This document shows positions 6,501 through 64,000 of a DNA stretch of 64,000 nt, one piece after another (position 1 is the first letter of the stretch; each line of letters opens with the position of its first letter). Source of the stretch: Callorhinchus milii (Eukaryota); assembly GCF_018977255.1 (NCBI RefSeq), contig NW_024704765.1, forward strand, positions 1,426,001 to 1,490,000, read 5' to 3'. The notes beneath the pieces were generated by a model. The model was not told the origin of the DNA. It saw only the letters and a program-made list of their open reading frames with translations, and did no database searches. Position numbers and translations under genes: made by a program.

Positions 6501-6757
6501 CCCTCAGCCTCTTTTGCTTCAAGACCAACCAGAGCCCTCTGAGTGAGCTGGTGGAGCTGCATTTTCACACGCACTTGGTCTCAAAGCACACCGACCCAGA
6601 GCGGTACAAAATCCTCCTCTTCCTGCCCCCCCGCTACCACGTTCTGTACAGTGTGGGACTCACGGGGGAGATGGCAAAGGTGGACATCCTCACCGACAAC
6701 TGGAAGCTTCTGCCCTTGATTAATGCTTATCTGTTGACCATAACATCTGAAAATTAG
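3581..6757 (+). CDS. AP5B1: AP-5 complex subunit beta-1, 2 coding exons: 3581-3727 and 4118-6757 (~928 aa)
   Basis: Coding exon 1 has a Kozak context gaccATGG and reads MATLQSEWTQTLAAFYANPTQF...DEKFSENVK|gtgact, resembling the human N-terminus (W..L.AF.ASP..F...EKLSEQTK). The acceptor tttcag at 4117 joins in frame to the long ORF (RAAACDCLRELETCRPGLL, FKSQLLRLFG, DHAHFYYTMLT, LFLPPRYHVL, TDNWKLLPLINAYL). The first 61 aa of ORF 3935-6757 are intronic SINE read-through. An acceptor at 3567-3568 implies an upstream non-coding exon. Confidence 0.93.
3860..4068 (+). mobile_element. 5'-truncated SINE in the AP5B1 intron
   Basis: Same core and tail as the other copies (CAATTGGCTGC...GTGAAGCGCTTTGAGAC...GGATTATTATT). 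Confidence 0.75.
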
Positions 6758-15157: not shown

Positions 15158-15519
15158 NNNNNNNNNNNNNNNNNNNNNNNNNCTTTGTGATACTGACTTA
15201 AAATGTCCAGACAGGAATTTTTTTCCCTCGGGCTGCGATGCCTTTGACTTGTTCATTGGGGGAAGGGCACATTTTGAGTGCGAGTGCGTGTGGGCGTCTC
15301 ACTCTCCTGCAGTTTTCAAAACCTCTGTATACCTCTCGTTCCTACACCAAACAAAATAAAAATGTTATAAAAGTGCTTGGATGCCTCTTTCTTCACCCAC
15401 TCGGAAATTAGAGAGCTGGTGTTGTGTGTGCGTGGGGAGTGCAGCTGTTTCTTTTTATTTAAGATTATTTAAGCCTGCCAGGGTCTGGGAAGGTTTAACT
15501 CTCTCTGTGCTGTGCTCAG

Positions 15520-16005
15520 TATTAACTGCTATCTTTGCGTGGCATGTGTGAGCCAATCAGGAGGGCATCGGTTTTGCTGACGTTGTGTTGGAGAAAGTTG
15601 TCCCTCGTCCAGGACTTGATGTTGAACAGGTCAGTCAGGACCTCAGTAGTCCTGGAGTTCAGGGTGGAGGCAGAGAGGTAGAGTTGGGTGTCATCCGCAT
15701 ATCTGTGGAAATTTACCCCATGTCTGCGGATGATGTCACCACAGGGGGAGCATATAGAGGGTGAAGAGGAGGGGACCGAGGACAGAGCCCTGAGGGACAC
15801 CGCACGGGACAGTGCGGGGGGGAGGAAAATCCGTTTGCAGAGACCAAGTGGAGGCGGCGTGAAAGGTAGGACCTGAACCAGTCAAGGACAGAGTCTTGGA
15901 GGTTAGGGTGGGAGGAGAGGCGGTGGAGGAGGATTGAGTGGTCCACGGTGTCAAAGGCTGCGGAGAGGTCGAGGAGGACGAGGAGACAGAGGGAACCCTG
16001 GTCAC
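15520..16005 (-). mobile_element. L2-clade LINE reverse-transcriptase fragment (frameshifted)
   Basis: [40 protein letters not shown] and FHRYADDTQLYLS are spread over three frames. Confidence 0.9.
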
Positions 16006-16106
16006 ACATAGTTTGTGACCCTGACCGGAGCACAGTCAAAAAAAGGTTCAAACCCCATGTCGGGACTTGGAAGCACATAATCTAAGCTGACGTTCCAGCA
16101 GCGCTG

Positions 16107-32300: not shown

Positions 32301-35300
32301 CTCTGAACCTTTCCTCAAAATTCGTCCTCTTCCTCCCCCTGCCTATTAGCCTTGTTGCTCACGCCTTTAATCAACACCACTAGTTAAAAAAGGTGGAAAG
32401 GAAATGATGGGGGACTATAGTTAGTCTCACACCAATGATAGGAAAAATTTTAGAATCATTGATTAAGGATGTGGTAGTGCGGTATTTAGGGCACAATATA
32501 ATTAGTCCAAGTCAACATGGCTTTACAAAAGGGAAGTCATGTTTGACAAATCTCATAGAGTTTTTTGAGGATATTTCCAGTAAACTAGATAAGGGTGAAT
32601 CAGTGGATGTGGTCTATTTGGACTTCCAGAAGGCATTCGATAAGGTGCCGCATAAAAGGTTAGTCCAAAAGATAAGGGCCCATGGAATTGGGGGGAGCAT
32701 ATTAACATGGATTGGGGAATGGTTAACGGGTAGGAAACAAAGAGTAGGGATAAACGGGTCCTTTTCAGATTGGCGGGATGTGACTAGTGGAGTGCCACAA
32801 GGATCAGTCCTTGGGCCTCAGCTATTTACCATCTACATCAACGATCTAGATGAGGACATCGAAGTTAATATATCTAAATTCGCGGATGACACAAAACTAG
32901 GAGGAAGTGTCAACACAGAGGACGACCATAAAAAAATGCAGCATGACATAGACAGGTTAGGTGATTGGGCAGGTGGGTGGCAGATGAAATATAATGTAGG
33001 GAAGTGTGAAGTCATCCACCTCGATAGCAAAAACAGTAGAGCGGGTTTTTTTAGAAGGGGAGAGATTGGAACGTGTTAGCGTCCAGAGGGACTTGGGTTC
33101 CTTGTACACCAATCACAGAAAGTTAGTCTGCAGGTGCAGCAGCAATTAGGAAGGCGAACGGTATGTTAGCATTCATTATGAAAGGATTAGAGTATAAGAG
33201 TAGGGAAGTCTTGCTGCAACTGTATAGGGCCCTGGTGAGACCACACCTGGAATACTGTGTGCAGTTTTGGTCTCCTCATTTAAGGAAGGATGTACTTGCC
33301 TTGGAGGGGGTGCAGCGTAGATTTACTAGGTTAGTACCAGGGATGAAGGGGATGAGTTACGAGGATAGGCTGACCAATTTGGGCCTATATTCTCTAGAAT
33401 ATAGAAGAATTAGAGGGGATCTTATAGAAACCTATAAGATCATCAAAGGGCATGATAGAGTAGATAGTGGGAGATTGTTTCCCCCGGTTGGAGAAACTAA
33501 AACCAGGGGTCACAACCTTAAAATCAGAGGCAGCCCTTTCGCACTGAGTTGAGGAAGAACTTCTTCACTCAAAGGGTAGTGAATGTATGGAACTCACTAC
33601 CCCAAAGGGCTGTTGACGCTCAGTCCTTGAACATATTCAAGACTGAGAGAGATAGATTTCTTATTGCAAAAGGGATTAAGGGATATGCGGATAAGGCAGC
33701 GTCAGGTTATTAGCTGGAGTTAGATTAGAAGATCAGCCATGATTGAATGGCGGGGCAGAGGCTCGAAGAGCCGAATGGCCTACTCCTGCTCCTACATGTT
33801 ATGTTATTTTATTATGTTACCATCAAGCTCCCCCTTCCTCTCTTGCCCCCCCGCCCAGCCTGCCCCACCATTGACAGTCAGGCCTTCACCCTCTCTGCCT
33901 CCACTCTTTGGATCGTCATCCCACATTTGCTTTGCCTCACTCCCCTCCCTTGCCTCCTTCACGGCCCGTCTCAAGACCTTCCTCTTTGGCCCCCTCGTAC
34001 CCCTTACCCTCCCTGCTCTCCAGCCCCTCCTGATCCCATTCAACCCATCGAGTCTGTGCTGGCTCTTTGAGAAGAATAGAAGGGTATCAGAGGAGGGATG
34101 AGGAGGTTGGGAGTTTGTGTAGATTAAACAGCAGCAAAGGTGAGTTGGACCCTTTAGAATCCTGTTTCTGTGCAGCAGCTTTCTATTTAATTCTATATAA
34201 TCCCTGCTCAGCACAGCCATGCTGTGTGAATGGCCCCTATAAGGACTTATTTTCGGCAAGATCAGCTAACTCCGCATGGACTGGAAAATTCAAACTAGGG
34301 TGATTTTCTGTCTCGTGCGCAGTCTAAGTCATAATTGCGTCACGCGATTTAACTTCCCCAAGTTTAAATTTCAGCGTTAGAGGTCACTGAGTGCTTTCTT
34401 CACTGATCGAGGCAAAGCGGTTTGGGAAAGAAATTTTGTGAGGACAGCAGGTGGCGTCTGAAAGCTCAGCCACTGATGGTGGAATGGAGGGAGTGGGAAT
34501 CGAGGGCAGGTCACGCTGGAAAAGGGTACAGACTGGAACAGAGGAGGATTAGAATAGGGGATGTAGAGTGAGAAGGGAGGGATTGGAAACCAGGACAGGT
34601 ATTGTGAAGTGGATTTGGTGAGTGGTTGGAGTTTGGCAAGGACGTGGTCAATGGGCCAGTTCTTTATCGGTTCATCTTCCAGATGTGCGTTTGGGAAGGA
34701 TCTTGAACTGACCAGACTCTCTTCATTTCCAACGTTAGGAAACCAGGTAGAACGAGCGGACCTGAGCCATTCCATACACGTGGACAACTGCATCCTGAAC
34801 TCCGAGGCTCTGGAATGTCGTAAGGAAACGCCGGCTTATACACAGCGGGATTACAGGTACAACAACGGCAAATAGTGAAAGGGAGAGAGAAAGTAATTGC
34901 TTCTTAATCACGTCAGAAAGCGATTTACAAGTGTAGTGACTGTTTTTTGTAGGAAAACAGGACCAGAATTTACCGTGCTCTCTGGAATTCTCTCCCCAAA
35001 TCCCTCTGTGTTCAGAACCCTGTTAAAAGCTTGTTTCCGGACCCTTAACCCCCTCCTCCCCGCCCCACCTCTGTTCCCCTCCAGCCTGCTCAGCACTTCC
35101 CATCATACTGGTCATCTGCTTTCAGACTGTCGTAACGCTATGTACGTGCCCGTTCTATGCCGCTGTGTAACCCCTTTGAGGCGTTTGATGTGATATAAGG
35201 CCTGAAAAAATACAAGTTGCAATCAAACTGTTCACCCAAAATATTGTATTAATTATTTCCCGAGGTGCCAATACAAACCTGACAGTGGACAAGAGTACCA

Positions 35301-49800: not shown

Positions 49801-50404
49801 CCATCATCACAAGAGATCCCAGCATAACATGGACAAGGGAGCCTTGCAACCAATAGTTGAGGCACTGGTAATAAAATAATAATAATAATCCTTGCATTTG
49901 ATGTAGCGCCTCATTACGTCTTGTAGACATCTCAAAGCGCTTCACAGGGTAAAACTGTTCAGCTGAGATGGTGGAAATCCCACTTTGGTTACTAGTTGCC
50001 ATCAGGGCAGAGAGAGGGAGTGTTCCTGCAAGTCATAAGGAGTCAATCACCAGATCTCAGTGGTTCTCTGCTGCAGATGTGCGAGGGCTGTGGTGGGTGA
50101 GAATGAAGTTGCTTTGGTTTGGCTCTCTCTGGGGTAGGAATCAATCAACAGATTAGCTCCACACAGCCAAACTCTCACCAGTCTCCCCCCAGTCACTGCC
50201 CTGTCGGGTCCTGAGGCAGAGAGAGAGGCACAGAGCTGCACATGAGGGGCCGGACCTCAACACTGACTTTCGTGGAGAGGAACTGGACTGAGGGACGAGG
50301 AGAAGCGCTGTGTGTGAGTGGTGTATATGAGTGTGTGTGAGAGAGGGAGAGGACAGGGAGTGTGTTACAGAGAAGCTGTGGGTGTGTGAACGTGTCTGAG
50401 GCTG

Positions 50405-51390
50405 TGTGTGTGCGTCTGGGGGGAGGTTGTGTCTGTGTGTGTGTGGGGGGGTGTCAGTGTCAGTGTGTGTGGGGGGGGTGAGTGTCAGTGTGTGTGTGGG
50501 GGGGGGGAGAGTGTCAGTGTGTGTGTGTGGGGGGGTGTCAGTGTGTGTGTGTGTGGGGGGGGGGTTAGTGTCAGTGTGTGTGTGGGGGGGGGAGAGTGTC
50601 AGTGTGTGTGTGTGGGGGGTGTCAGTGTGTGTGTGGGGGGGGGGGAGTGTCAGTGTGTGTGTGGGGGGGGGTGTCAGTGTGTGTGTGGGGGGGGGGTGAG
50701 TGTCAGGGTGTGTGGGGGGGGGGATGTCAGTGTGTGTGTGTGGGGGATGTCAGTGTGTGTGTGGGGGGGGGTGAGTGTCAGTGTGTGTGTGGGGGGGGGA
50801 GAGTGTCAGTGTGTGTGTGTGGGGGGTGTCAGTGTGTGTGTGTGTGGGGGGGGGGGTGAGTGTCAGTGTGTGTGTGTGGGGGGGTGTCAGTGTCAGTGTG
50901 TGTGTGGGGGGGAGAGTGAGTGTCAGTGTGTGTGAAGGTGTGTGAGTGTGTTAGAGTGTCTGGAGAGGTTGTGTCAGTGTGAGTGTGTGTGTCTGAGGGT
51001 GAGTTTGTGTGTTTGGGGAGGACTGTATGTGTGTGTTTCTGAGGGAGGGACAGGGAGTGTGTGAGTGTGTCTGTAGGTGAGTGTTTCTGTGTGTGTGTGT
51101 GAGTGTGTGGGAGGGACAGGGAGTGTGTCTGAGGAAGGGACAGGGAGTGTGTGAGTGAGTGTGTGTGAGAGTCTGAGTGCGCCTGTGTGTGTGAGGGTGT
51201 CTGTGAGTGAGTGTGTGTGTCTCTGAGTGTGCGTGTGAGGGGTGGGGGTGTGTGAGTGTGTGTGAGTGAGTGTGAGGGGTGTGTGTGCCTGTGTGAGTGA
51301 GGGGGTGGGGGTGTGTGTGTTTGAGTGTGAGGTGAGGGGTGGGGGTGTGAGTGTGGGGGGGTGTGAGTGTGTGTGTGTGTGAGGAGGGGG
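50405..51390. repeat. GT/G-rich minisatellite and low-complexity tract upstream of CLDN19
   Basis: GTGTCAGTGTGTGTGTGGGGGG units followed by degenerate (GT/GA)n. Confidence 0.9.
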
Positions 51391-51967
51391 GTGGGCAGGG
51401 CAGGGCAGTGGTGGGCAGGGCAGGGGGGGCAGGGCTGGGCAGGGCAGTGGTGNNNNNNNNNNNNNNNNNNNNNNNNNNNNNNNNNNNNNNNNNNNNNNNN
51501 NNNNNNNNNNNNNNNNNNNNNNNNNNNNNNNNNNNNNNNNNNNNNNNNNNNNNNNNNNNNNNNNNNNNNNNNNNNNNNNNNNNNNNNNNNNNNNNNNNNN
51601 NNNNNNGGCAGGGGGGGCAGGGGGGGCAGGGCAGGGCAGGGCAGGGGGCAGGGCAGGGCAGGGGGCAGGGCAGTGGTGGGCAGGGCAGGGCTGGGCAGGG
51701 CAGTGGTGGGCAGGGCAGTGGTGGGCAGGGCAGGGGGGGCAGGGCAGGGCAGGGCTGGGCAGGGGGGCAGGGCAGGGCTGGGCAGGGGGGCAGGGCAGTG
51801 GTGGGCAGGGCAGTGGTGGGCAGGGCTGGGCAGGGCAGGGCTGGGCAGGGGGGCAGGGCAGGGCTGGGCAGGGGGGGCAGGGCAGTGGTGGGCAGGGCAG
51901 TGGTGGGCAGGGCTGGGCAGGGCAGGGCTGGGCAGGGGGGGCAGGGCAGGGCAGGGCAGGGCAGGGC
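51391..51967. repeat. (GGGCA)n-based G-rich satellite abutting the CLDN19 ATG; contains an N gap
   Basis: GGGCA/GGGCT/GTGGT units run directly into ...cagggcATGG. Confidence 0.95.
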
Positions 51968-54900
51968 ATGGCGGGCTGGGGGTCTCAGCTGGTGGGGTAT
52001 GTGCTGGGGGTCGGGGGGTGGATGGCCATCATCTCGAGCACTGCGCAGCCGCAGTGGAAACAATCCTCTTACGCCGGAGACGCGATCATCACCGCTGTGG
52101 CTCTGTATGAGGGACTGTGGATGTCCTGCGCTTCCCAGAGCACCGGACAAGTGCAGTGCAAACTGTACGACTCACTCTTATCTCTGGNNNNNNNNNNNNN
52201 NNNNNNNNNNNNNNNNNNNNNNNNNNNNNNNNNNNNNNNNNNNNNNNNNNNNNNNNNNNNNNNNNNNNNNNNNNNNNNNNNNNNNNNNNNNNNNNNNNNN
52301 NNNNNNNNNNNNNNNNNNNNNNNNNNNNNNNNNNNNNNNNNNNNNNNNNNNNNNNNNNNNNNNNNNNNNNNNNNNNNNNNNNNNNNNNNNNNNNNNNNNN
52401 NNNNNNNNNNNNNNNNNNNNNNNNNNNNNNNNNNNNNNNNNNNNNNNNNNNNNNNNNNNNNNNNNNNNNNNNNNNNNNNNNNNNNNNNNNNNNNNNNNNN
52501 NNNNNNNNNNNNNNNNNNNNNNNNNNNNNNNNNNNNNNNNNNNNNNNNNNNNNNNNNNNNNNNNNNNNNNNNNNNNNNNNNNNNNNNNNNNNNNNNNNNN
52601 NNNNNNNNNNNNNNNNNNNNNNNNNNNNNNNNNNNNNNNNNNNNNNNNNNNNNNNNNNNNNNNNNNNNNNNNNNNNNNNNNNNNNNNNNNNNNNNNNNNN
52701 NNNNNNNNNNNNNNNNNNNNNNNNNNNNNNNNNNNNNNNNNNNNNNNNNNNNNNNNNNNNNNNNNNNNNNNNNNNNNNNNNNNNNNNNNNNNNNNNNNNN
52801 NNNNNNNNNNNNNNNNNNNNNNNNNNNNNNNNNNNNNNNNNNNNNNNNNNNNNNNNNNNNNNNNNNNNNNNNNNNNNNNNNNNNNNNNNNNNNNNNNNNN
52901 NNNNNNNNNNNNNNNNNNNNNNNNNNNNNNNNNNNNNNNNNNNNNNNNNNNNNNNNNNNNNNNNNNNNNNNNNNNNNNNNNNNNNNNNNNNNNNNNNNNN
53001 NNNNNNNNNNNNNNNNNNNNNNNNNNNNNNNNNNNNNNNNNNNNNNNNNNNNNNNNNNNNNNNNNNNNNNNNNNNNNNNNNNNNNNNNNNNNNNNNNNNN
53101 NNNNNNNNNNNNNNNNNNNNNNNNNNNCCTCCCCCCCCCCTCCCCCCACACACACACATTATTCATTTCAATTTCTTTTTGCGTAAAATTAGCCAAATCT
53201 GGAGAACCGTTCAGTAAAGTAAACAGGAAAATCAACAGAATAAACTTCTCTGTTATAGAACAGAGAGAAACTCTGAGCACTGCACTGACTAACTCACACT
53301 GATCACATTATAATATAAAACATTATTATGTATAATAGTCTATATGTTATATTTACAACATTTTATTGTATAATTAACTAATTTTTGATTGATTTTAAAC
53401 ATCCCAAGTGGCATTTTCTTTTTTTAAAAAAAATCAGTGATTCAAACCGTTCCTTGTTTTTGTTTCATAAAGTAAATTATTATTATTTTGGGGGGTGGGG
53501 TGGGGGGGAGATTATTTCTACTATAATTATCATCAATATTGTGGTTCTGACCTGCCGAGTGGTGGGGGTGAGACTGACACAACAACAACAAAACTCCCTT
53601 TTATTCCACGTGCAATGGATAAGTTGTTGTTTATTTTGGGGGAGGAATAACGCACAAAATGGACAAACTGGTGTTTTGGCTAATTTTACGCGAAAGAAAA
53701 TTAAAATGCATATAGTAATAATAATCCTCGCATTTGATAAAATGCCTTATCACGTCTTCACAGGAAAGCATATTGACTGTATATTTTGTGGGCATATGGG
53801 GTGGGGTAAGGACTCCAGGATATCAAATTAGATTAAGTGATCTGATAAATAATCACCGATATCAAGTATAATATTGATCCATTTTGAGTGAACTCGTTAA
53901 GTTTTGTATAGAGCTCTCACTTCTGAGTTGGCTCGTGTGTTCAAGCCCCATTTTGATCTGGAACCCTTATAGACTGGACCGACTCTCCTGGTGTCCTGCC
54001 AACAATCGTTTATTCACTTCATGGTTGTTTGGGGGACGTTTCTGTGCGCAAATTGACTGGACCTCCATCCCACGATCGCTTCACCTCACTTCCTCCCTCG
54101 CCTCCTTCAAGGCCGGTCTCAAGACCCTTCTCTTCGATCGTGCCTTTGGTCTCCCTCCCACCTCTCTGCCTTCCCTCACCCCTACACCATCCCTCCCCCA
54201 TGCTCAGGCCCGACACCTGACTGTTCAGCACTTTGGGACGTCCTCCCGACGTGAAAAGGGCTCTATAAATGTCATTTTGATGTTGGTGTTGTTGACAATG
54301 TGATGAGGCTCTGTATCAAATGCAAGAATTATTATTATTATTATCTGGTACTCAGCACCTGCTAATGTTAATACTGTTCAGAGTTTCTCTCTTCTGATTG
54401 AGAAGTTTATTCTGCTGATTTTTTTCCAGCGTTTTTTGTGCAGATCAAAACATCCTCCATACACTGCATTGGCTGTTTGTGCAGATATGTTGTGTGATAA
54501 AATAGCCACAGCATTCGGCTGGAGTCACTGTGCTTGACAGATATTACTCTAAAGTGTTTGAGGGTGTTTTGGGGTTTGGGTTGTTGAGGAGCTGTAACTC
54601 TCCCATGCAGTGTTCAGAGGAGTGCTGCGTGGTTGGCGTGATGTCCTCAAGATGAACTGTAAATTGAGGTCCTGTTGGGGGTGTATGACAAAGCTTGCCG
54701 CACTCATGGCAAAGAGGACAGCGTTTCTCTGCTCACTAACTCACTAACTCACTCACTCATTAAAACGTTAAACCGAGATCCTGTCTGCGCCCGTTCAGGT
54801 GGTCGTTAAAGATCCTGTGGCTTCTATTCGAAAAGAGAAGGGAATTTCTTCATCCCTGTGTTCTGGCCAACAACACCAACAGATATTTTTTAAAAATGGG

Positions 54901-57900
54901 TCACTCACCCCATGGGACATTGCTGTGAGCAACTAGTTGCTATGATTCGCCTATAAAATTCACCTCACTTTAGAGTGAAGCGCTTTGAGATGTCTTAACG
55001 ATGCGATAAGGCGCTACATCAAATGTAAAAAATAATATTATGAACACAGGAGTTATTCAGAGTGTTTTGTGTTTAGCGCACATACAGGCATCCAGAGCTC
55101 TGATGGTCCTGGCTATTGTCCTGGGATTCCTTGCTGTGATTGTCAGTGTGGTGGGGATGAAATGTACCAAAGTGGGAGACAACGCTCCAGTCATCAAGAG
55201 CCGTATCGCGGTGGCGGGAGGCATTCTGTTCCTTAGCGCTGGTAAGTATTTTGTCTTGTTTTTAATAAGGCCACGTTAAATATCAGATCTCTTCTAGAAC
55301 ATAAGAATTAGGAGCAGGAGTCGGCCAGTCGGCCCCTGAAGCCTGTGCCCCGCCATTTGATAAGATCATGGCTGATCTTCAGACCTAACTCTAATTACCT
55401 GCCCTGTCCCCATATCCCCTAATCCCTCTATTTTTTTAAAAATCTATCAGTCTCAGCCTTGAAGATGTTCAAGAACTGAGCGTCTACAGCCTTCTGGGGG
55501 AGTGAATCCCATAAATTCACTACTCTCTGAGTGTAGAAATGTTCCCTCAACTCTGTTCTAAAAGGCTGACCCTTAATTTTCAGACTGTGACCCCCGGTTA
55601 TAGATTCTGCTGCTTGAGATGTGACCAGTCAACATGTTGTAGCAATGTGTAGTGTCAGTCTGTGGCTCAGTCACTGACGCTCTCGCCCCTGGGTGGGAAG
55701 GTCATGGGTTCGAGCCCTGCATTGGGACTTGATCCCTCAGTCTAGGCTGACACTCCAGTGCGATGCTGGGGGGCAGGGGGCTGGGGGGAAGGATGGTCAC
55801 AGGTGCCATCCTTCAGATGAGATGTTATGTTGAAGTCTGCCTGTTTAGGAGGATGTTTAAGATCCGGTGACTATCTGAAAAGAGAAGGGCCTCAGTTAAA
55901 AAACAGCTTGATGCTGTAATAGGGAGGATGGGATGGTACGGTTTGGGATTGTGGGAGCAAGTGGGCTGAAGAGACCTCTCCTTGTGAGCCTGTGTTGTGA
56001 TCTTGTGATTGAAGGTCAAACGGAGCCCTGACCTCCCCGCCTCGTGTATCTCCACAGGATTCTGCACTCTGGTGGCCGTTTCCTGGTACGCGGCCAAAAT
56101 CACCAATGACTTCTTCGATCCCTTTACCCCCATCAACGCCAGGTATCTCTGAACTCGCCTTTAATCCCTCACCGCTGGCTAACATCTCTCTTGTCGCTGC
56201 CTCATCCCACAAGTTGAAATTCCTTCCAGATTTTTTGCTTTTTTTTATTTTACATTTTTTTAAATTTAGTGTGTCCGGTTATTTTCTCAAATCATCTCCC
56301 TCGCTGCCATCCGCCTCTCTGTTCCTGATCTGGCCGCACACCCCCTTGGGCTGCAGCTTCATGGGCGCTGGTTGCCCTCCAGTGCACACCTCCCTCCCCC
56401 TCCGCCTGCCTGCCCGGGCATTATTCATGTGCGGAGCCTTGACCAGTGGCTGTTGGCAGGTTATTCAACTGTATAACTCCGGCACAGAGGAGCCTGACAC
56501 ATATGCCACATATGCGCTCAGCCAGTAGAGGGTGCCATAAAGGGTCCAGGACCGGGAAGCCTGGCTGGTTTCACCTTCCCTGACGTGGGATAGCCGTGGG
56601 CCAGAGCCAATTTAACATCCAAACACACGTGGAGTCCTGTATCTCAGTGGTTAGAGCACTCGCCCTTCAAACGAAAGGACTGGAATCAATTTCCATCTGA
56701 GCGAAACATTAGGCAAGATTCCTTACTCTTTTTACAGAGCAGTAAGTAGGAACCCGGTTGTTAGTCGATTAGCGGATCGCTTTTCCGGGGGTAATAATCT
56801 CTTCACAATGGAACTTCTCAGCAATATGATAAGGCGCTGTATCAAATGCAAGGTTTATTATGTTGTGAATTATGGGGACTTGATCTCACATATGGATCTG
56901 TTGATTTTATGAACTTTGACCTCTTGCTTTCCTCTTCCCCCCCCCCCCAACACCATCCACAGGTATGAGTTTGGTTCAGCCCTGTTTGTGGGGTGGGCGG
57001 CAGCACTTCTTACCTCATTGGGGGGGTCGTTCCTGTGCTGTTCATGCCCCAAGGAGGAGCAAAGAGGCCAGATGTACTACAGATCATCTCAGCCCTCCAC
57101 AGTCAGAGAGTACGTGAACAGTAAACTTTATCTATCGTCACTTTTAAAGCCATTTCTTGGTGATGTTCAGTGTTCAATATGAGGCTAGAAGCCTCATATA
57201 TATATATGTTTAATTATATATATATAGTAAATCTGTTCACATTTCCCATACTTTGCAAAATACCACAAAAAAAATCTTTAGACATTAAAAAAGATACACA
57301 GATGATCTATCGAACTTCATGCTTCTGTTACAACAAGAAGAACAACAAATTGCATTTATAAAGCACCTTTCGTGTCCAGCGGATGTCCCAAGGCTCTGGA
57401 CACGAAAGGTGCTTTATAAATGCAATTTGTTGTTCTTGTTGAGAGTTTGCATGGGTGCTGAAGACGGGATTCAAAAGGGGTGCTCAGGTGGGAAGGTGAC
57501 CGAAGGCCCAATTGCCAATGATAGGGCGGGGGAACATGGAGAAGGTCAGTGCCTGCTGAATGGAGGGAGCAGGCAGTTTGGTAGCCTATTAGAAGGTCAC
57601 AGAAGTAGCGAGTCTCGAGAACGTGGAGGGCTTTGAAAGCGAGCACAAGGATCTTGAACTTGATCCTCTGGGGGATGGGTAGCCAGTGGAGCCGGATGAG
57701 GGTGGGGGTGATGGGGTCATGGAGACTACTGAAGGAGAGGACACAAGCTGCAGAGTTCTGGATGATCCGTAGCTTGTAGAGGAAAGCGTTAGGAAGGTTG
57801 GGCGCATGTAGTGGTCCATTTAAGCTGAATGTCAATGCCGTCTTGTCAAGGCCTCTGGATGTCTGAGGCCATCCTCATTGTCTCTTTCCTGCAGGTGAGT

Positions 57901-58717
57901 TTCCTCCTTAACAGGTTGTGCAACATTTAGCACAGTTGGTAGCTCTCTCACCTCTGAGGCAAAAGGTTGTGGGTTCAATCCCCACATCAGGTCTTTGAGT
58001 TGCACAGTCCAGGCTGATACTCCAGCGCAGTGCTGGGGGAGGCCTACGATGTTGGAGGTGCCGATGGGAAAATGACCAAAGAGGTAGCACTTGAGATGAA
58101 TGTTGAAGGAGGCAAGGGATTCAGGGATGGAGTTCTAGAGAGTGGCGACAAAGAGGCTGAAGCCCTGACAACTGATGGTGGGATGGGCAGGGTAGGTAGG
58201 GTGGGGGATGTAAAGTCAATTGACTGTATATTTGGTGGGCAAAATGTATGCTTTAGATGGGGTAAAACGTGAGAGGTTATTTCCATTGATCAGATAGTCT
58301 GTAACAACAGGATGTGCACCAAATGCAAAAAGGGGAAGAAAACAAAATAAACCAAACAAGATTTGTAGAATAATAGAAGTTGTTTTGATGCAATGCAATG
58401 TGGAATATCTGACCACAAATACCTGTTCAACTGCCGTAAAAATCATTTAATAGGGAACTGGATAATTGCTTGAGAAAAATAATATTAAAGGATACTTGGA
58501 AAGAACAGGTGAGTGGGATTAGAGTAGAGAGCTCCAGTAGGGGAGTGAGCACCAGCACAGACACGATGGGGAGAGAGTAGGGAATGAGGTTAGAGTAGAG
58601 AGCTTCAGTGGGGGGGCACGAGCTATGATTGATGTTTCTCACTGACAAGTTTTTCTTTCACATTTCAGAACCACCTTTAAAAAGTCGATGACTGCCAATG
58701 GGGAGCAGTATTTGTAG
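51968..58717 (+). CDS. CLDN19: Claudin-19, exons 51968-~52190 (3' end in N gap), 55077-55241, 56058-56142, 56963-57109, 58669-58717 (~222 aa)
   Basis: [81 protein letters not shown] and GGSFLCC are near-identical to recalled human CLDN19. Exons 2 and 3 have the classic claudin sizes of 165 and 85 nt. The final exon (tttcag|A ACC ACC TTT...GAG CAG TAT TTG TAG) gives ...[17 protein letters not shown]; this last exon is less certain. The gene is downstream of P3H1 on the same strand, as in human. Confidence 0.92.
52188..53126. other. Assembly gap (N run); smaller gaps at 15158-15182 and 51453-51606
   Basis: Runs of N next to G-rich repeats. This gap hides the CLDN19 exon 1 donor. Confidence 0.99.
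55297..55610 (-). mobile_element. CR1 LINE 3' fragment
   Basis: AGAACATAAGAATTAGGAGCAGGAG...GATCATGGCTGATC is the reverse complement of the CR1 3'UTR seen at ~33730-33800. Confidence 0.8.
56629..56862 (+). mobile_element. tRNA-derived SINE with internal deletion
   Basis: Head and tail of the family; core missing. Confidence 0.75.
57340..57808 (-). mobile_element. L2 LINE 3' fragment in CLDN19 intron 4
   Basis: Encodes [10 protein letters not shown]...[30 protein letters not shown]. Confidence 0.85.
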
Positions 58718-58935
58718 GTCAGCATCAACCAGAGGAGTTTGCAATCTCCAAAGAAGCAATAGAGTTTATTCTCTATCCTCTAATGAGAAAGTCAATGGAC
58801 TTTCTTCACATTAGCAACCGTGAAACATCAATGTATTCTATGTGCTCATTAAACGTGTACTTAGCTCCGAGTAAGGTGTGTAGACGTGACCTAAACTAAA
58901 CTTAGCATTGTCCTTATATCCCCTCCTCCTTATAT

Positions 58936-59320
58936 GTGGAGTCCTGTATCTTAGAGATTAGAGCACCCGTCTCGCAAGCGAGAGGAACTGGGATCAATTC
59001 CCAGCATGGAGAAACTTTGGACAAGTTTCCTTACTCCACACGCCTCTGTTTACCTAGCAGTAAGTAGGAACCTGGTTGTTAGTCGATTGGTGGATCGCTT
59101 TTCGGGGTAATCTTTTCAAAATAAATAAAAATAATAATTTGGTCACTCAATCCACGACTGTTTTTGTAAGACGTTGCTGTGCGCAATTGGCTGCTGCGGT
59201 TCACCCACAAAATATCCAGTCAATTCACTTTACAGTGTTAGGGTTAGGGTTGTGAAGCGCTTTGAGGCATCTCGAAGACATGATAAGGCACTGTATCAAA
59301 TGCAAGGATTATTATTATAA
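58936..59320 (+). mobile_element. Full-length tRNA-derived SINE
   Basis: Head, core and (ATT)n tail, in the probable CLDN19 3'UTR. Confidence 0.85.
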
Positions 59321-61485
59321 TAATGCAAGTGCCTAGAGATACTGTGTAGATTCATCATCCGTGTGTGCTGCCCATTGTAATATTTCTGTACACTGTCTGT
59401 TGTGAACTCGCGCTATTTACCGGAACCTGGAGAGAAGGAACGTTTTCTTTTAATAAATGTAAAAAAATATTTCTCTGGGTACTCGAGGACATCAGAAACT
59501 TTGAGCTCCTGGGCACGCTAAGCTGACACCACCACCAACAAAAACTGGAATTTATATAACACCCATCATGTAAAATAACATCTTGGAGCAAATACAAACA
59601 CGGGATGATGTGGGGAGGGGAGGGGGGGACAGAGGTAAGTGACCATAGGCACAATCGAAGATGGAGGTGATCAGATCGCATTTAAAGATTGATAGAGAAG
59701 AGGTGAGGAGAAGGTGATGGGGACGGCTTCTGCCTTTACATGTAAACTGCAGAAAACTCAGGCTCATTCCTGACCTTGATAGGAATATAGCAGCAGGAAG
59801 AAGCTATTCAGTCCCTCAAGCCTATCCCACCACTTTCCAAAATCACAACTGATCAACAAATCATTGCTGTCTGGCAGACAGACAGTAACACTCCAGCGCA
59901 GTGCTGAGGGAGCGCGGAGAAATGAGACCTTCATTGAAGTCCTAGCTGTGCCTGTTAGGGGGGCGTTAAAGATCTAGTCGAAAGAGAAGGGAATTTCTCT
60001 CTCCCGGTGTCTTGGCCAACATTCCCCGACGTACAACTGGTCACTCGCTTCATGGCTGTTTGTGGGACATTGCTGTATGAAAATGGCCTGTCACCTTCAC
60101 CTACAAATTGATAGGGACTCGATCTGTATTTTCTGGCTTTTTCTTGGACTTTCATCCCCTTTTGAATTGTTTAATTCACATTCATGTGAGGGGATGGGGT
60201 CAGGGGGAGGGAGAGGAAATCCATGCCAGAGCCTCGTATACCTCAGTGTACATACTACAACAACAACTTGCATTTATACAGCACCATTCACGCAAGCTAA
60301 CGTCTCAGCACGGCACCGAGATGGGGGGGAGGGGGGTGGTGACCGTAGGCACGGTCGAAGAGGAAGATCGAAGAGGAAGGTCTTCAGGTGCAATCTGAAG
60401 ATGGTGAAGGAGGCGAGTTGGAGGGATTGAGGGAGAGTTCCATAGTTTTGGGGTGCAGTGGCTGAATATAGAGCAAAGCTCCCTCTACACTGTGCCCACA
60501 CTCCCAGGTCAGCAACAGCACGGGTTAGAGACAGAACAAAACTGTCCGTCAAAATCTGGTATAAATCTGTTTTTATTCTAGTCACTATCAAAGCACCATT
60601 TAAAGTTTGACAAAAAATAAACGTAGATGAAATGTAAAGATAATTGGGATTATGAAACATATACATTGTTTAAAACTATCACAGAAGGTGAGCGTCAGAA
60701 ACAAAACCAAGAAACACCAACAGCTGAACAGCAGAGATCTGAAGGCATTTTGTTAAAAGATATAGAAAGGGAAATTTTGGAGATTTCTAAACAAAGATAT
60801 TAAAACTCACCACAGATTACGTTGTACAGAAGAACTTCCTCTTCGATCAGTGACTAACCCCCCCCACCCCCTTCCCTCCCACTGTCAAGTGCTCTGGGAC
60901 GCTATCCTGCGCGAGGGACGCAATATAAATGCAAGTTGTTGTTGAATTTAAGACTCTGCTTCGGGTGCATCAAACACCCCTTGAAATCCTCAAACGTTAG
61001 CGGGAAACTTGTGAACTCGTTAACCTCGCCCTGTGCAATTGACAATTTGAAGTTTATTTTTACTTTGTTTTTTGTGAGTGTTTTTGTGACGCACAGGAGG
61101 GAAGGGATGATGATGGGGGGGAAGGATTAAATCCAGCGTTTACCAGCTGCCAAGCCAATATTTCCGGAACTACATTACATTTTACGGGTCTCTGACTGCA
61201 ACAGAGGGGGTATAACAAATTAATTAGTGTTTTTGGCAATTGATTACACAATAAAATCTCATGTCACTTAATTATAATGTTTCCTGAATACCAAGAGAAG
61301 AGGGAATCCAAATATTTAACATTAGCCCTTATTCCATCGATGTTTATTGTGCTCTGAAGAATAATTTGTGGCCAGCATCTTCAAAGGGATTTGTCGGCTG
61401 TTAATGAGGTTTGATTTAATTTGGGTTGGTTCGTGGTGTTGGTTGGTTGCTGTTGGTTTACAACGGTCCTGACTCCTGCTCAGCA

Positions 61486-63381
61486 ATGATCCTTATGGTC
61501 CAAATCCTAGCCTTCAGCCTGGCTCTGCTCTCTACTCTCTTCCTCATAGTAGCGACCTGGACAGATTGCTGGATGGTGAACTCAGATGACAGTTTAGAGG
61601 TGAGTCTTTGTCTTTGACTCCTTACTTGTTGAGCCCGGCTGACACTCGCCAATAATGGGTGTGAATCTCGTTTCAGCATGAAGATACACTCTAAACATTC
61701 AGTGTGTTATCGGCAGGTCAGTCAGAAGTGCCGGGGTCTGTGGTGGGAATGTGTTACCAATAACGTGGATGGGATCAGGACTTGTGACCAATATGACTCC
61801 ATATTAGCCGAACATCCATGTGAGTACACCGTGTCATCACTGAGCGTGCGTAAGCCTCTGTTCCCAGGCAGCATTAATAATAACAATAATCTGGTATTTG
61901 ATACTGCGCCTCATCATATGTTTGAAACATCTCAAAGTGCTTCACACAATACAACAACAACAACAAGATTCCATTTATAGAGCGCCTTTCACGTCGGGAG
62001 GACGTCCCAATAGACTGTAAAGGGAATTGACTGTACATTTTGTGAGCGAATTGGCAGCCAATTGCACAGCAGCATCCCACAAACAGTCGTGGATTGAGTG
62101 ACCAATTAATAGTATTCTTTTTTATTGAAAGAATTATTACACTCATTTGTTTCCTGTAAAATGCAGACATAGAGTGCGACACTTAATATGATAATTATCA
62201 CTGGCAAAAACTTTGACCCTAACTGCCTTTAACTACAAAATACACAGTGACTACACTTCGCAGTAAAATCCTGTAAAGCGCTTTGAGAGGTCCTCCTGAA
62301 GTGTAAGACGCTGCATCAAATGGTGTTCACTCCCAAAGTCAACAGTTGAAGAAACCAGTTTCCAAATTAACAGTGAACCGCAAAATTCTTACAATTTCCT
62401 TTTTTTAAAATAAATACTGTTGTGGAATCTTTAAAGTCCGTCCGAAAATTGGCAAGCTAGGTCAGTTTAACGTCTCACCCAAAGGATGAACTTCTGCCAA
62501 TAATAATAATAATGATCCTTGCATTTGATACAGCGTTTTTCACGTCTTCTCAACGTCTCAAAGCGCTTCACAGAATATATTGTAAAGTGAATTGACTGTA
62601 TATTTGTGGGGAAACGTGGGGACCAATTGCGCACAGCAGCGTCACACAAACAGTCATGGATTGAATAATGTATAGGAATCGGTTGTTTGAACATACTCAT
62701 ATCTTCAAGCAAGCATATATCAAAACTAAGGCAAATATTTAATTAAACATATTACATTCAGAATGATTCAATATAATAATCCTTGCATTTAATATGGCGC
62801 CTTATCACGTCTTTGAGATGTTTCAAAGCGCTTCACAAAACATATTGTAAAGCAGATTCACTGTATATTTTGTGAACAAAACTCGGCAGCCAATGCCAAG
62901 TCCCGGGGGAGCTGACCACAACCTTCTGACCCAGAGACAAATGCTCTCTTGTTATCAAGTGGGAGAAACTCCCTTCTCTTTTTGAGTCGTGTCATAGGAT
63001 TATTAACGTCCAACAACAATGAACAACAAATGACATTTTTAAATGGCCACTTTCATATCAGGAGGACGTCCCAAGGCGCTGGGCAGTCACGGATTTGGAC
63101 CCGAACTGGGGGTTGGGATCAAGAGGGATGGAGGGCAGAAAGAGGTGGGAGAGTGACCAAAACCAATTTGGGTTGATGTGGTGACTATTTTCGGCCCGGT
63201 GTCTTCCCCTCTGCAGTTAAGATCGTGCTGACACGTGCTCTGATGATCACCTCTGATATCCTGACGGGCTTCGGGTTGATTGTCCTGATCCTGGGTTTGG
63301 AATGTGTGAAGATCCTGAAAGACGAACCTCAGGTTAAGCTGAGGATCTGTTACGTGGCCGGGTTCATCCTCGGAATGGGGG
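61486..63381 (+). CDS. CLDN16: Claudin-16-like (paracellin-1 family), partial: exons 61486-61599, 61717-61819, 63217-63381; remaining exons lie beyond the window
   Basis: [38 protein letters not shown]|[35 protein letters not shown]|[19 protein letters not shown]...[24 protein letters not shown] closely matches recalled human CLDN16 ([56 protein letters not shown]). Exons are 114/103/165 nt with canonical GT-AG sites and no stops. Orthologue versus paralogue is unresolved. Confidence 0.88.
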
Positions 63382-64000
63382 GTAAGTCCTGTCCCAGGAA
63401 CAAGCTGATGTTCTCTCCTAACATGGCTCCAAGGAAGTACGAGGAGGTTTGTCCCTCATTGTTAGGAAAGTTCTGGTGCCCGTGATTATAAGGGCACAGA
63501 GAATTAATCCAGAGGAGATCAACAAGAATGATCCCCAGTGTTAGATGGATGAGCTGTGAGGAACAACGAGGTAAGACAGGGCTCTTTAGCCTTCAAAGGA
63601 GACTTTAGAGATAATAATAATATTTTTTGCATTTTATACAGGGCCTTATCACATCTTCAAGACGTCTCAAAGTTCTTCACAGAATTTACTGCAAAACATA
63701 GAGACTCCATGCATTGTGGGCAAAATGCGGCAGCCAATTGCGCACTGCAGAGTCCCACAAACAGTCATTGATTGAGTGACCAAATTATTATTATTATTTT
63801 TATTTTTTTAAGGGATTATTACCCCTGGAAAAGTGTCTAAAATGGTAAATGGGATTGAGAAAGTAAACACAGAACAATACTGTTAGATATCTATATAAGC
63901 CGATGGTACAATCTTAAAGGGGGTGAAGGAACAGAGAGACCTGGGGTTCATATCAGTAAATCTTTGAAGGTGGCCGGACAGGGAGATAAAGCTGTTAAAA

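Follow-up and report, generated by a model that had tools for sequence, protein, structure and literature searches.

An intact claudin-16-like gene of a second ancient claudin-16 lineage lies next to CLDN19 in Callorhinchus milii

Gene content of the locus

The window considered here is a 64-kb stretch of the Callorhinchus milii genome, along one strand of which are found, in order, AP5B1, a leprecan/prolyl 3-hydroxylase (P3H) gene, CLDN19 and exons 1-3 of a claudin-16-type gene whose three coding exons start at an ATG at 61486. The features are as follows (window positions, strand, description).

3923-6754, + strand: AP5B1-like gene, a single large ORF (Pfam AP5B1_middle, E 1e-150; also AP5B1 barrel, C-terminal and N-terminal domains)
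17372-37580, + strand: gene of the leprecan/prolyl 3-hydroxylase family, located upstream of CLDN19; 11 or more exon-like ORFs, with KQEL at the end of the final one
51968-52187, + strand: CLDN19 exon 1, codons 1-73 plus 1 nt (PF00822, E 8.5e-10)
52188-53127, no strand: assembly gap (N) at the CLDN19 exon 1/intron 1 boundary
55077-55241, + strand: CLDN19 exon 2, 165 nt (PF00822, E 1.7e-9; splice sites read)
56058-56142, + strand: CLDN19 exon 3, 85 nt (PF00822, E 0.0065)
56963-57109, + strand: CLDN19 exon 4 (PF00822, E 0.011), ending in GA before the donor gtacgt
58669-59051, + strand: CLDN19 exon 5 and 3′ UTR, 7 codons with the stop at 58688-58690, from contigs of putative RNA runs
60841-60934, + strand: upstream exon of the claudin-16-like gene, probably non-coding, from the UniProt/Ensembl model P0203 (A0A4W3GM69, 252 aa)
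61486-61599, + strand: claudin-16-like coding exon 1, 38 codons, donor gtgagt; TM1 and the start of ECL1
61717-61819, + strand: claudin-16-like exon 2, 103 nt, acceptor cag, donor gtgagt; the remainder of ECL1
63217-63381, + strand: claudin-16-like exon 3, 165 nt, acceptor cag, donor gtaagt; TM2, intracellular loop and the start of TM3

The leprecan gene is recognized by TPR_leprecan domains in four exon ORFs (E 3e-31, 3e-23, 1e-21 and 5e-11), by a 2OG-FeII_Oxy_3 domain (E 2e-5) and by human P3H1 as its top solved chain (8k0e_A, E 9.5e-29), in agreement with the original prediction, which had placed a P3H-family gene upstream of CLDN19. CLDN19 exon 1 has mouse claudin-19 as its top solved chain (3x29_A, E 2.4e-34), followed by claudin-9 and claudin-4 at about 1e-19, and exon 3 shows 59% identity to the corresponding part of the bird model P0192 (described below). 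We noticed no CLDN1-like exon anywhere in the window; the claudin-16-like gene is preceded by the leprecan gene and then CLDN19, and does not have the CLDN1, P3H2 and TMEM207 neighbourhood of mammalian CLDN16.

Two N gaps lie near CLDN19. The gap listed above opens one base past codon 73 of exon 1 and has intron on its right side, so that frame agreement across it carries no meaning; judging from the CLDN19 portion of the bird model P0192, about 3 nt of exon 1 and the donor site would fall within it. It costs only the end of this exon, and the claudin-16-like gene, 8.4 kb downstream, is unaffected.

Direct reading of claudin-16-like exons 1-3 reveals no in-frame stop and GT/AG splice sites throughout. 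Their peptides are identical at 126 of 126 residues to XP_007896097.1 (P0054, "claudin-16-like [Callorhinchus milii]", 220 aa), specifically at 38/38 residues for exon 1 (residues 1-38), 34/34 for exon 2 (39-72) and 54/54 for exon 3 (74-127); the gene is already annotated at NCBI under this accession. An intact three-exon gene of the CLDN16 family, with canonical splice sites and beginning about 2.8 kb past the CLDN19 stop on the same strand, had been predicted from the sequence, and this reading is confirmed, the measured distance from the CLDN19 stop to the ATG being 2,795 nt. A tblastn search with P0054 found neither exon 4 nor exon 5 within the 64-kb window; three of the five coding exons are inside the window and exons 4-5 are beyond its end. 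As for the putative upstream exon, the N-terminal 32 residues of P0203 map to 60841-60934 with 31/32 identical, a GT is present at 60935-60936, and the acceptor AG (61482-61483) is found 2 nt ahead of the ATG.

Family membership and gene structure

Taken singly, exons 1 and 3 are weaker than the Pfam claudin cut-off (matches in the range E 0.015-0.08, among them E 0.015 and 0.042 for these exons) and exon 2 has no Pfam claudin match; therefore, the assignment to the claudins rests on PF00822 in the full-length protein and on homology searches. P0054 has precomputed PF00822 and PF13903 domains and matches solved claudin-4, -9, -3, -15 and -19 over residues 5-193, with E values from 4e-14 to 8e-11. 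When the exon 3 peptide was searched against 1.84 billion representatives, 38 matches were obtained at E<=1e-3 (36 claudin-16-type and 2 repetitive proteins), and because this peptide alone gave such matches (top E 3.9e-36), chance resemblance is excluded. With the exception of a fused claudin-19 model, all named proteins among the matches listed for the family are claudin-16 or claudin-16-like. The ECL1 signature of the claudin superfamily, W...GLW...C...C, is present in exons 1-2 (W29, G45-L46-W47, C50 and C61 in P0054 numbering).

The resemblance to mammalian CLDN16 (paracellin-1) extends to the gene structure. For the human gene, Table 4 of PMC7140793 gives exon ends at c.324, c.427 and c.592, with c.428-c.592 as exon 3; the claudin-16-like exon ends are equal to the human ones, exons of 103 and 165 nt occur in both, exon 1 ends at codon 38 as in the human gene when counted from M71, and both have an extra intron inside ECL1. 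The cation permeability of claudin-16 depends on five acidic ECL1 residues (human D104, D105, E119, D126 and E140) according to PMC3867513. By the residue lists in PMC3867513 and PMC7140793, ECL1 is almost identical in P0054, which keeps all five acidic residues (5/5) as well as 27/32 of the positions with disease-related missense changes in human. Set against primate CLDN16, P0054 is 65.9% identical, does not have the 70-residue N-terminal extension, and differs in its N-terminus and TM1.

Two claudin-16 lineages

The original prediction took the gene to be a second CLDN16-type gene rather than a translocated orthologue. A second C. milii claudin-16-type protein was indeed found, XP_042195100.1 (P0167), on a different scaffold (20,284,933 bases, compared with 10,246,770 bases for that of P0054). 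In a careful maximum-likelihood (ML) tree of CLDN16 and CLDN16-like proteins (54 rows, 236 columns), a split between two clades, A (mammalian-type) and B, is supported at 100/97, with P0167 in clade A and P0054, outside the mammalian-type clade, in clade B; a quick tree of 70 rows likewise recovered the split. In the careful tree, P0054 is grouped with Mobula (97/89), P0167 is nested in a chondrichthyan A clade (100/94), and the terminal branch measures 0.34 for P0054 versus 0.81 for P0167. The window gene is thus a member of a second ancient claudin-16 lineage and not an orthologue of mammalian CLDN16.

Beside C. milii, clade B holds a ray, sturgeon, eels, osteoglossomorphs, frogs and sauropsids, among them the 'claudin-16-like' proteins of Bombina (P0041), Anguilla (P0043), Gallus (P0089) and Mobula (P0045). 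P0054 shares 72-79% identity with the members from fishes and frogs (72.7% with frog B, 74.1% with sturgeon B) and 60.5% with P0167. Since both clades contain chondrichthyans and osteichthyans, and since a single clade of all 9 chondrichthyan rows, a grouping chosen after the tree had been viewed, is rejected by the AU test (dlnL 67.5, p-AU 3e-8), the duplication is older than the split between cartilaginous and bony fishes. The sole lamprey sequence joins the tree at a point between the two clades. The A/B tree is one without an established root: CLDN19 parts used as an outgroup fall inside the amphibian A-type on a saturated branch (about 10 changes per column), a meaningless position that provides no usable root.

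Only four columns separate the clades cleanly (P0054 positions 75, 93, 159 and 180), and P0054 has the B state at 4/4. The divergent TM1 that had been taken to fit a paralogue is accordingly a real difference, but a minor one. The five acidic residues are not equally constant in clade B: D104, D105, E119 and D126 are each kept in 25/25 rows and E140 in 14/25. At the C-terminus, P0054 reads S-R-V where human CLDN16 and the A-type read T-R-V, and T303R is pathogenic in human; the T is kept in 1/23 B rows, and S is also found in the lamprey and in the C. milii A-type. Judged by the residues themselves, T to S at this PDZ-type end is a conservative change. In the sauropsid B-type, R replaces the second W of GLWW and many have C for W in ATWTDCW, whereas shark, fish and frog B-type proteins keep the A-type residues at these sites.

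With the type of a species called by name and diagnostic columns, at least six species have both types among the matches listed (C. milii, Hemicordylus, Nothoprocta, Otus, Cuculus and Pogona). Among the annotated proteins in the matches listed, 32/32 mammal-named proteins are A-like and none falls in clade B, as would be expected if the gene had been lost in mammals, which the original prediction proposed. No paper describing the B-type paralogue was found in the literature; a B-type transcript is reported from eel larvae in PMC8227761 (Table 4). The RefSeq naming is inconsistent, since 'claudin-16-like' is also applied to elasmobranch A-type proteins, and 'claudin-16' to some B-type proteins of birds and alligator.

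The idea that the window gene is the elephant shark's sole CLDN16, that is, the mammalian orthologue moved beside CLDN19, draws on its clear claudin-16 type, its 65.9% identity to primate CLDN16 and its matching exon structure, but is contradicted by the placement of P0054 in clade B and P0167, from the other scaffold, in clade A, by the B state at all four diagnostic columns and by the AU test, and is extremely improbable.

Linkage to CLDN19

Three bird gene models join CLDN19 exons to B-type sequence, namely P0192 (XP_053853617.1, 'claudin-19 isoform X2', Vidua macroura, 411 aa), P0207 (Vidua chalybeata, 411 aa) and P0202 (Phoenicopterus, 332 aa). They run through CLDN19 exons 1-3 or 1-2 and then continue as B-type claudin-16-like sequence, full-length in both Vidua models and C-terminally truncated in P0202; models that reach CLDN19 exon 3 splice it to the acceptor that shortly precedes the B-type ATG. 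As gene models, of which two carry the LOW QUALITY flag and two belong to a single genus, they are evidence for order and strand only. Because fused models from three birds extend from CLDN19 into the B-type, the linkage is old, and because birds too have the B-type immediately after CLDN19 and in the same orientation, the arrangement is probably ancestral for jawed vertebrates. The ancestral linkage with CLDN19, which had been proposed as a 'classic claudin + claudin-16' pair, is thereby backed.

The same models bear on the suggestion that the duplication was private to cartilaginous fishes or chimaeras and came to lie beside CLDN19 by chance. Among the matches listed, the chondrichthyan B-type is seen just in C. 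milii and Mobula, and six elasmobranch species have the A-type alone; nevertheless, there are B-type orthologues in ray-finned fishes, frogs and sauropsids, a single chondrichthyan clade (named post hoc) is rejected at p 3e-8, and birds show the same CLDN19-to-B-type order, so that the ML tree, the AU test and the bird models contradict a private duplication, which can hardly be credited.

The two genes could also have come to lie side by side through a misjoin in the assembly, somewhere from about 58700 to 61400. Contigs of the DNA run X1 break at each high-copy repeat between 59041 and 63108, including those at 59041-59298 and 60011-60502, and thus give no independent bridge from CLDN19 to the claudin-16-like gene; the two N gaps near CLDN19 point in the same direction. 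On the other hand, X1 covers every bin of 57401-63400 with unique pieces that are nearly identical and correctly ordered (60914-61974 with 1 mismatch; 63109-63400), and the bird models independently put the B-type immediately after CLDN19 in the same orientation. A misjoin is therefore very unlikely.

Expression

Three sequencing runs (X6, X8 and X11) are only guessed to be RNA, come from unspecified tissues, and are represented by contigs, which drop rare transcripts. In each of them, a CLDN19 contig match begins exactly at 58669, just past an AG at 58667-58668, and reaches 59040-59051, plus 375-555 letters beyond the stretch examined. No claudin-16-like contig is seen in them, the depth at 61201-61800 and 63201-63400 being 0 in 3/3 of these putative RNA runs. 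The co-regulation of the two genes that had been suggested thus finds no support here.

The zero exon depth in runs that do contain CLDN19 would suit a gene that is intact yet silent, or a decaying relic, in the elephant shark. We consider this improbable: the runs are of the putative kind just described, the 220-codon frame is open in the NCBI model with splice sites intact, and the UniProt/Ensembl model has a spliced upstream exon. Moreover, the end branch is shorter than that of P0167 (0.34 vs 0.81), and 27/32 disease positions are kept versus 23/32 in P0167, the species' own A-type copy.

Origin of the pair

In human, CLDN19 lies beside P3H1 at 1p34, and CLDN1 and CLDN16 are arranged head-to-head, whereas CLDN19 and the B-type are head-to-tail. 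PMC9226698 places P3H2, CLDN1, CLDN16 and TMEM207 in the human 3q28 interval. The interval parallels the window in its order of leprecan, classic claudin and claudin-16-type gene, a parallel that spans three genes; the window has CLDN19 for CLDN1 and the B-type for the A-type, and the C. milii B-type, unlike mammalian CLDN16, adjoins CLDN19. A 2R origin of the CLDN16/CLDN16-like pair is plausible, in which a block 'P3H - classic claudin - claudin-16' would have been duplicated in the early vertebrate genome duplications.

The B-type may instead be an ancient paralogue that arose by small-scale duplication or transposition next to CLDN19. The orientation differs between the two pairs, and a lone lamprey sequence between A and B does not fix the timing; against this stand the like order of the three genes at the window and at human 3q28, and a duplication older than the split between cartilaginous and bony fishes, which fits the timing of 2R. 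We regard the small-scale origin as somewhat unlikely, though deserving of weight.

Interpretation

Taken as a whole, the window gene is very probably an intact, ancient B-type claudin-16, with CLDN19 as its probable ancestral neighbour; it likely encodes a cation pore and is plausibly derived from a 2R block. The B-type would have split from the mammalian-type A lineage before cartilaginous and bony fishes diverged, and would survive in the chimaera, at least one ray, sturgeon, eels, osteoglossomorphs, some frogs, turtles, lizards, crocodilians and birds. Its product is predicted to be a four-pass tight-junction claudin that keeps the claudin-16 extracellular loop and the five acidic residues. 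From these features, it most likely makes paracellular pores that let cations pass, and claudin-19 is a plausible heteromeric partner in them.

A more far-reaching proposal, which we hold to be doubtful, is that CLDN19 and the B-type form a functional module selected to stay head-to-tail for about 450 million years, in which shared regulatory elements or read-through would set the ratio of the partners, the bird splices from CLDN19 exon 3 to the B-type would be real, and mammals, after losing the linked partner, would depend on the unlinked A-type. If true, the missing kidney partner of claudin-19 would be the B-type in basal fishes as well as in frogs, reptiles and birds. The second claudin-16 copy and its arrangement with CLDN19 are, in any case, common to the elephant shark and birds, and are not seen in mammals among the matches listed.

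Gene content of the locus

The order of genes on the forward strand of the window is AP5B1-like, leprecan/P3H, CLDN19 and claudin-16-like, and the features on which the following analysis draws are these:

3923-6754, forward: AP5B1-like gene, one complete open frame of 944 codons (Pfam AP5B1_middle, E 1e-150)
about 17372 to 37580, forward: exon-like ORFs of a leprecan/prolyl 3-hydroxylase family gene
15158-15182, 51453-51606 and 52188-53127, no strand: runs of N (assembly gaps)
55077-55241, forward: CLDN19 exon 2, its first two bases completing a split codon
57109, forward: end of CLDN19 exon 4, donor gtacgt
58669, forward: start of CLDN19 exon 5, stop codon at 58688-58690
60841-60934, forward: extra upstream exon of the UniProt model P0203 (252 aa), 31/32 identity, GT at 60935
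61486-61599, forward: claudin-16-like exon 1, starting at ATG, GT donor, no stop
61717-61819, forward: claudin-16-like exon 2, AG acceptor, GT donor, no stop
63217-63381, forward: claudin-16-like exon 3, AG acceptor, GT donor, no stop

The original prediction of a CLDN16-family gene with three exons, canonical splice sites and no stops, beginning about 2.8 kb past the CLDN19 stop on the same strand, is borne out by direct reading of the window, the ATG lying 2,795 nt downstream of that stop. The three exon peptides are fully identical (38/38, 34/34 and 54/54) to P0054, the NCBI protein XP_007896097.1 (claudin-16-like [Callorhinchus milii], 220 aa). The feature is therefore a real gene, already annotated and complete in the NCBI model, and this model, identical to the three window peptides, was used for all whole-protein analyses; a tblastn search with it placed neither exon 4 nor exon 5 within the window. 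A search with the exon 3 peptide among 1.84 billion representatives returned 38 proteins at E<=1e-3 (36 of claudin-16 type and two repetitive proteins), and the single exons scored below threshold against Pfam. The acceptor for the upstream exon of P0203 lies 2 nt ahead of the claudin-16-like ATG.

The upstream neighbour is identified as CLDN19 by its exon 1 peptide, for which mouse claudin-19 (3x29_A) scores E 2.4e-34 and both claudin-9 and claudin-4 score about 1e-19; exons 2-4 match the claudin Pfam family. The gap at 52188-53127 opens one base past codon 73 of exon 1. The gap would have taken the final 3 nt or so of exon 1 together with the donor site, because the CLDN19 part of P0192 (a bird model joining CLDN19 exons to claudin-16-like sequence) has two residues separating the counterparts of codon 73 and of exon 2's first complete codon; with an intron to the right of the gap, a reading frame across it is meaningless. 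The claudin-16-like gene lies 8.4 kb beyond the gap and is unaffected. A G/T-rich low-complexity array, translating into repeated GGVSVCV, occupies 50400-52150, spanning the CLDN19 start and the stretch immediately before it, and is probably, with two gaps flanking it, the cause of poor assembly there.

Further upstream, four exons of the leprecan gene match TPR_leprecan (E 3e-31 to 5e-11) and one matches 2OG-FeII_Oxy_3 (E 2e-5). Among solved chains, human P3H1 is the best match to its exon 1 (E 9.5e-29), in a PDB that holds neither P3H2 nor P3H3, and an Atlas look-up of this exon gave 'leprecan family' with no finer name. Human AP5B1 lies at 11q13, not 1p34. Two long forward ORFs (223 and 141 aa) at 32408-33549, in a P3H intron, appear by eye to be retroelement-like with reverse transcriptase (motif ...YLDFQKAFDKVPH...), and a fragment resembling them lies on the reverse strand at 15525-16081.

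Two ancient claudin-16 lineages

Claudin-16-related proteins were collected by three protein searches (best 120 of 247, 120 of 250 and 120 of 227 matches), and among the matches listed, proteins named 'claudin-16' and 'claudin-16-like' occur together in many non-mammalian species. The elephant shark itself has a second protein, P0167 (XP_042195100.1, 232 aa), encoded on a different contig from P0054 (20,284,933 vs 10,246,770 bases). In a careful maximum-likelihood tree (54 hand-picked rows, 236 columns, LG+C20+F+G4), with rows chosen from 191 proteins to cover taxa, fragments and isoforms being excluded and most bird and mammalian sequences omitted, one branch with support 100/97 divides the family into clades A and B, and a quick tree of 70 rows gives the identical split. 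Clade A comprises lamprey, lungfish, coelacanth, Huso, bichir, gar, amphibian and mammalian proteins and the sauropsid ones named 'claudin-16', together with seven chondrichthyans including P0167 (100/94). Clade B unites a pair formed by P0054 and Mobula (97/89), three frogs, a set of Acipenser, eels and osteoglossomorphs, and sauropsids on a long stem (100/100).

A sole elephant shark CLDN16, displaced to this locus and grouping with the mammalian gene, would be a competing account, and it is contradicted by this tree: the window gene falls outside the mammalian CLDN16 clade, at the same 100/97 branch, and it is P0167, on the other contig, that groups in clade A. A tree made to unite the nine chondrichthyan rows in one clade, a group defined post hoc, is worse by 67.5 log-likelihood units (p-AU 3e-8). 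Identity between P0054 and P0167 is 60.5%, but P0054 reaches 72.7% with the B-type protein of Bombina and 74.1% with that of Acipenser. The terminal branch of P0167 measures 0.81, vs 0.34 for P0054, the A-type copy being the faster-evolving one in the elephant shark; an older RefSeq version of P0167 (P0204, 315 aa) has at its end a long repeat rich in proline and serine.

In the 54-row tree the lamprey sequence branches off between gnathostome A and clade B, and a root on the lamprey branch or anywhere on the A-B path leaves both gnathostome clades monophyletic and makes the duplication older than the divergence of cartilaginous from bony fishes. Rooting with a CLDN19 outgroup (the corresponding parts of P0192 and P0202, another bird model of this kind) yielded a saturated branch of about 10 changes per column, attached within amphibian A-type sequences, which is uninformative and makes a meaningless root. 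The midpoint root fell on the long sauropsid-B stem in the quick tree and on the A|B branch in the 54-row tree, and was not relied upon.

Four alignment columns distinguish the two clades, and a sort of 206 family proteins among the matches listed gave 114 A-like and 92 B-like members, the columns coming from the same 54 rows and the sort thus not being independent of the tree. Among the annotated proteins in these matches, all 32 mammal-named ones are A-like, as are all those of salamanders, caecilians, coelacanth and lungfish; clupeocephalan teleosts have none in either class, and eels and osteoglossomorphs are the only teleosts with a B-type. Mammals appear to have retained only the unlinked claudin-16 copy; absences among annotated, listed proteins are no proof of loss.

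In sauropsid B-type proteins (P0048, P0051, P0052, P0089 and P0127) the conserved CRGLWWEC stretch has R at its second W, and in turtles and birds the W of ATWTDCW is replaced by C as well; with the long stem (0.28), this suggests a functional shift in the reptile and bird B-type. In the sturgeon model P0001 (Acipenser sinensis, 179 aa) the exon 3 segment is present twice. P0039, also from sturgeon, shares 98% identity with this model, and genome duplication in sturgeons or an artefact of the model may be the cause.

Linkage with claudin-19

Evidence for the same gene order outside the elephant shark comes from gene models of birds. CLDN19 exons 1, 3 and 4 had no match among the proteins gathered before the fusion search, in which a 246-aa B-type query was used and candidates as long as 430 aa were admitted; this search yielded two fused models, and a cluster look-up the third. 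P0192 ('claudin-19 isoform X2 [Vidua macroura]', 411 aa) matches window CLDN19 exons 1-3 over residues 1-158 at 67, 65 and 59% identity, and its residues 162-411 form a complete B-type protein with 78% identity to that of chicken. P0202 (Phoenicopterus, 332 aa) matches CLDN19 exons 1-2 over residues 24-148 and is B-type over residues 152-332, stopping short of the normal C-terminus. P0207 (Vidua chalybeata, 411 aa) is built like P0192, judging from inspection of the sequences. For such models to arise, the B-type gene must adjoin CLDN19 on its downstream side and share its strand, which is the arrangement in the window. A low-quality flag is attached to two of the three models, and a single genus supplied two; what they document is the order of the genes, and they do not establish that a fusion protein exists.

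Taken with the tree and the mammal-named proteins listed, the bird models uphold the proposal of an ancient CLDN16 paralogue adjoining CLDN19 and seen in no mammal. The view that the window gene is this second, ancient paralogue linked to claudin-19 is thus supported, and the ancestral jawed vertebrate probably possessed a pair of claudin-16 genes, of which one immediately followed claudin-19. As to how the pair arose, the human order is CLDN19-P3H1-YBX1, on which a literature search found no paper. The human 3q28 interval holds P3H2, CLDN1, CLDN16, TMEM207 and IL1RAP, according to a table in PMC9226698. The parallel between P3H2, CLDN1 and CLDN16 there and leprecan, CLDN19 and B-type claudin-16 in the window is suggestive of a block duplication, and a 2R origin of the A/B pair is plausible.

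Sequencing reads, repeats and expression

Contigs from sequencing runs were compared with positions 57401-63400. Those of X1, a DNA-like run, cover all 30 bins of this stretch, with near-identical contigs over exons 1-2 (60914-61974, one mismatch) and exon 3 (63109-63400) of the claudin-16-like gene; they are broken at each high-copy repeat and so provide no bridge between it and CLDN19. Summed contig depth is very high at 59001-59400, 61801-62200 and 62401-62800, with a maximum near 1e6 in X1 and elevated values in the putative RNA runs as well. These peaks mark SINE-like repeats of high copy number, which lie between the two genes and within claudin-16-like intron 2, and many contig 'joints' run between repeat copies and are not splices.

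In all three putative RNA runs (X6, X8 and X11), contigs match from exactly 58669 to 59040-59051, with 375-555 further letters falling outside the compared stretch, which fits spliced CLDN19 mRNA using exon 5. With the exon 4-5 splice (57109 to 58669), its acceptor backed by these contigs, the C-terminus reads ...REPPLKSR and lacks the Y-V terminus usual in claudins; if the exon 4 donor is read through, the frame continues as ...REYV and then 23 extra codons. At the claudin-16-like exons (61201-61800 and 63201-63400) depth is zero in the same runs, and this, beside a CLDN19 exon 5 contig in each, counts against simple co-expression in those samples. The idea that the two genes are co-regulated is accordingly left unsupported by X6, X8 and X11. 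For eel larvae, a table in PMC8227761 includes 'Claudin-16-like isoform X1' as differentially expressed.

Likely function and significance

Human numbering was obtained through gorilla CLDN16 (P0098, 305 aa) as a proxy, whose residue agrees with the wild-type letter at 32/32 table positions. The exon ends of the window gene equal c.324, c.427 and c.592 of human CLDN16, as given in Table 4 of PMC7140793. Positions of human disease missense variants are identical in 27/32 cases in P0054 and in 23/32 in P0167. All five acidic residues of ECL1 are identical in P0054 (5/5), and these residues confer Na+ permeability on claudin-16, according to a review (PMC3867513). The PDB holds no claudin-16 structure, the best matches being claudin-4, -9, -3, -15 and -19. 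Judged from sequence, the B-type protein is most likely a cation-permeable tight-junction pore protein, plausibly one partnered with claudin-19. In mammals, claudin-16 and claudin-19 make up the paracellular Mg/Ca pathway of the thick ascending limb, and loss of either leads to FHHNC.

In full-text literature searches (on synteny, paralogues, lamprey, ohnologues and cartilaginous fish) no description of a second claudin-16 lineage was found, and 'claudin-16-like' with its variants had two incidental mentions, including the eel expression-table row. The main text of an ohnologue database paper (PMC13450315, 2026) contains neither 'claudin' nor 'CLDN' nor 'P3H', and its supplements or online tables may list the family. 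What is new is the interpretation and not the sequence, B-type genes already being in RefSeq and UniProt.

RefSeq names mix the A and B lineages, so that 'CLDN16' in non-mammalian genomes needs rereading. A salmonid kidney study (PMC11605958) calls the claudin-19 partner in fishes unknown; the B-type is a candidate for this partner in fishes, with teleost B-types seen only in eels and osteoglossomorphs. The CLDN19/B-type pair offers a natural experiment on why partner genes remain linked.
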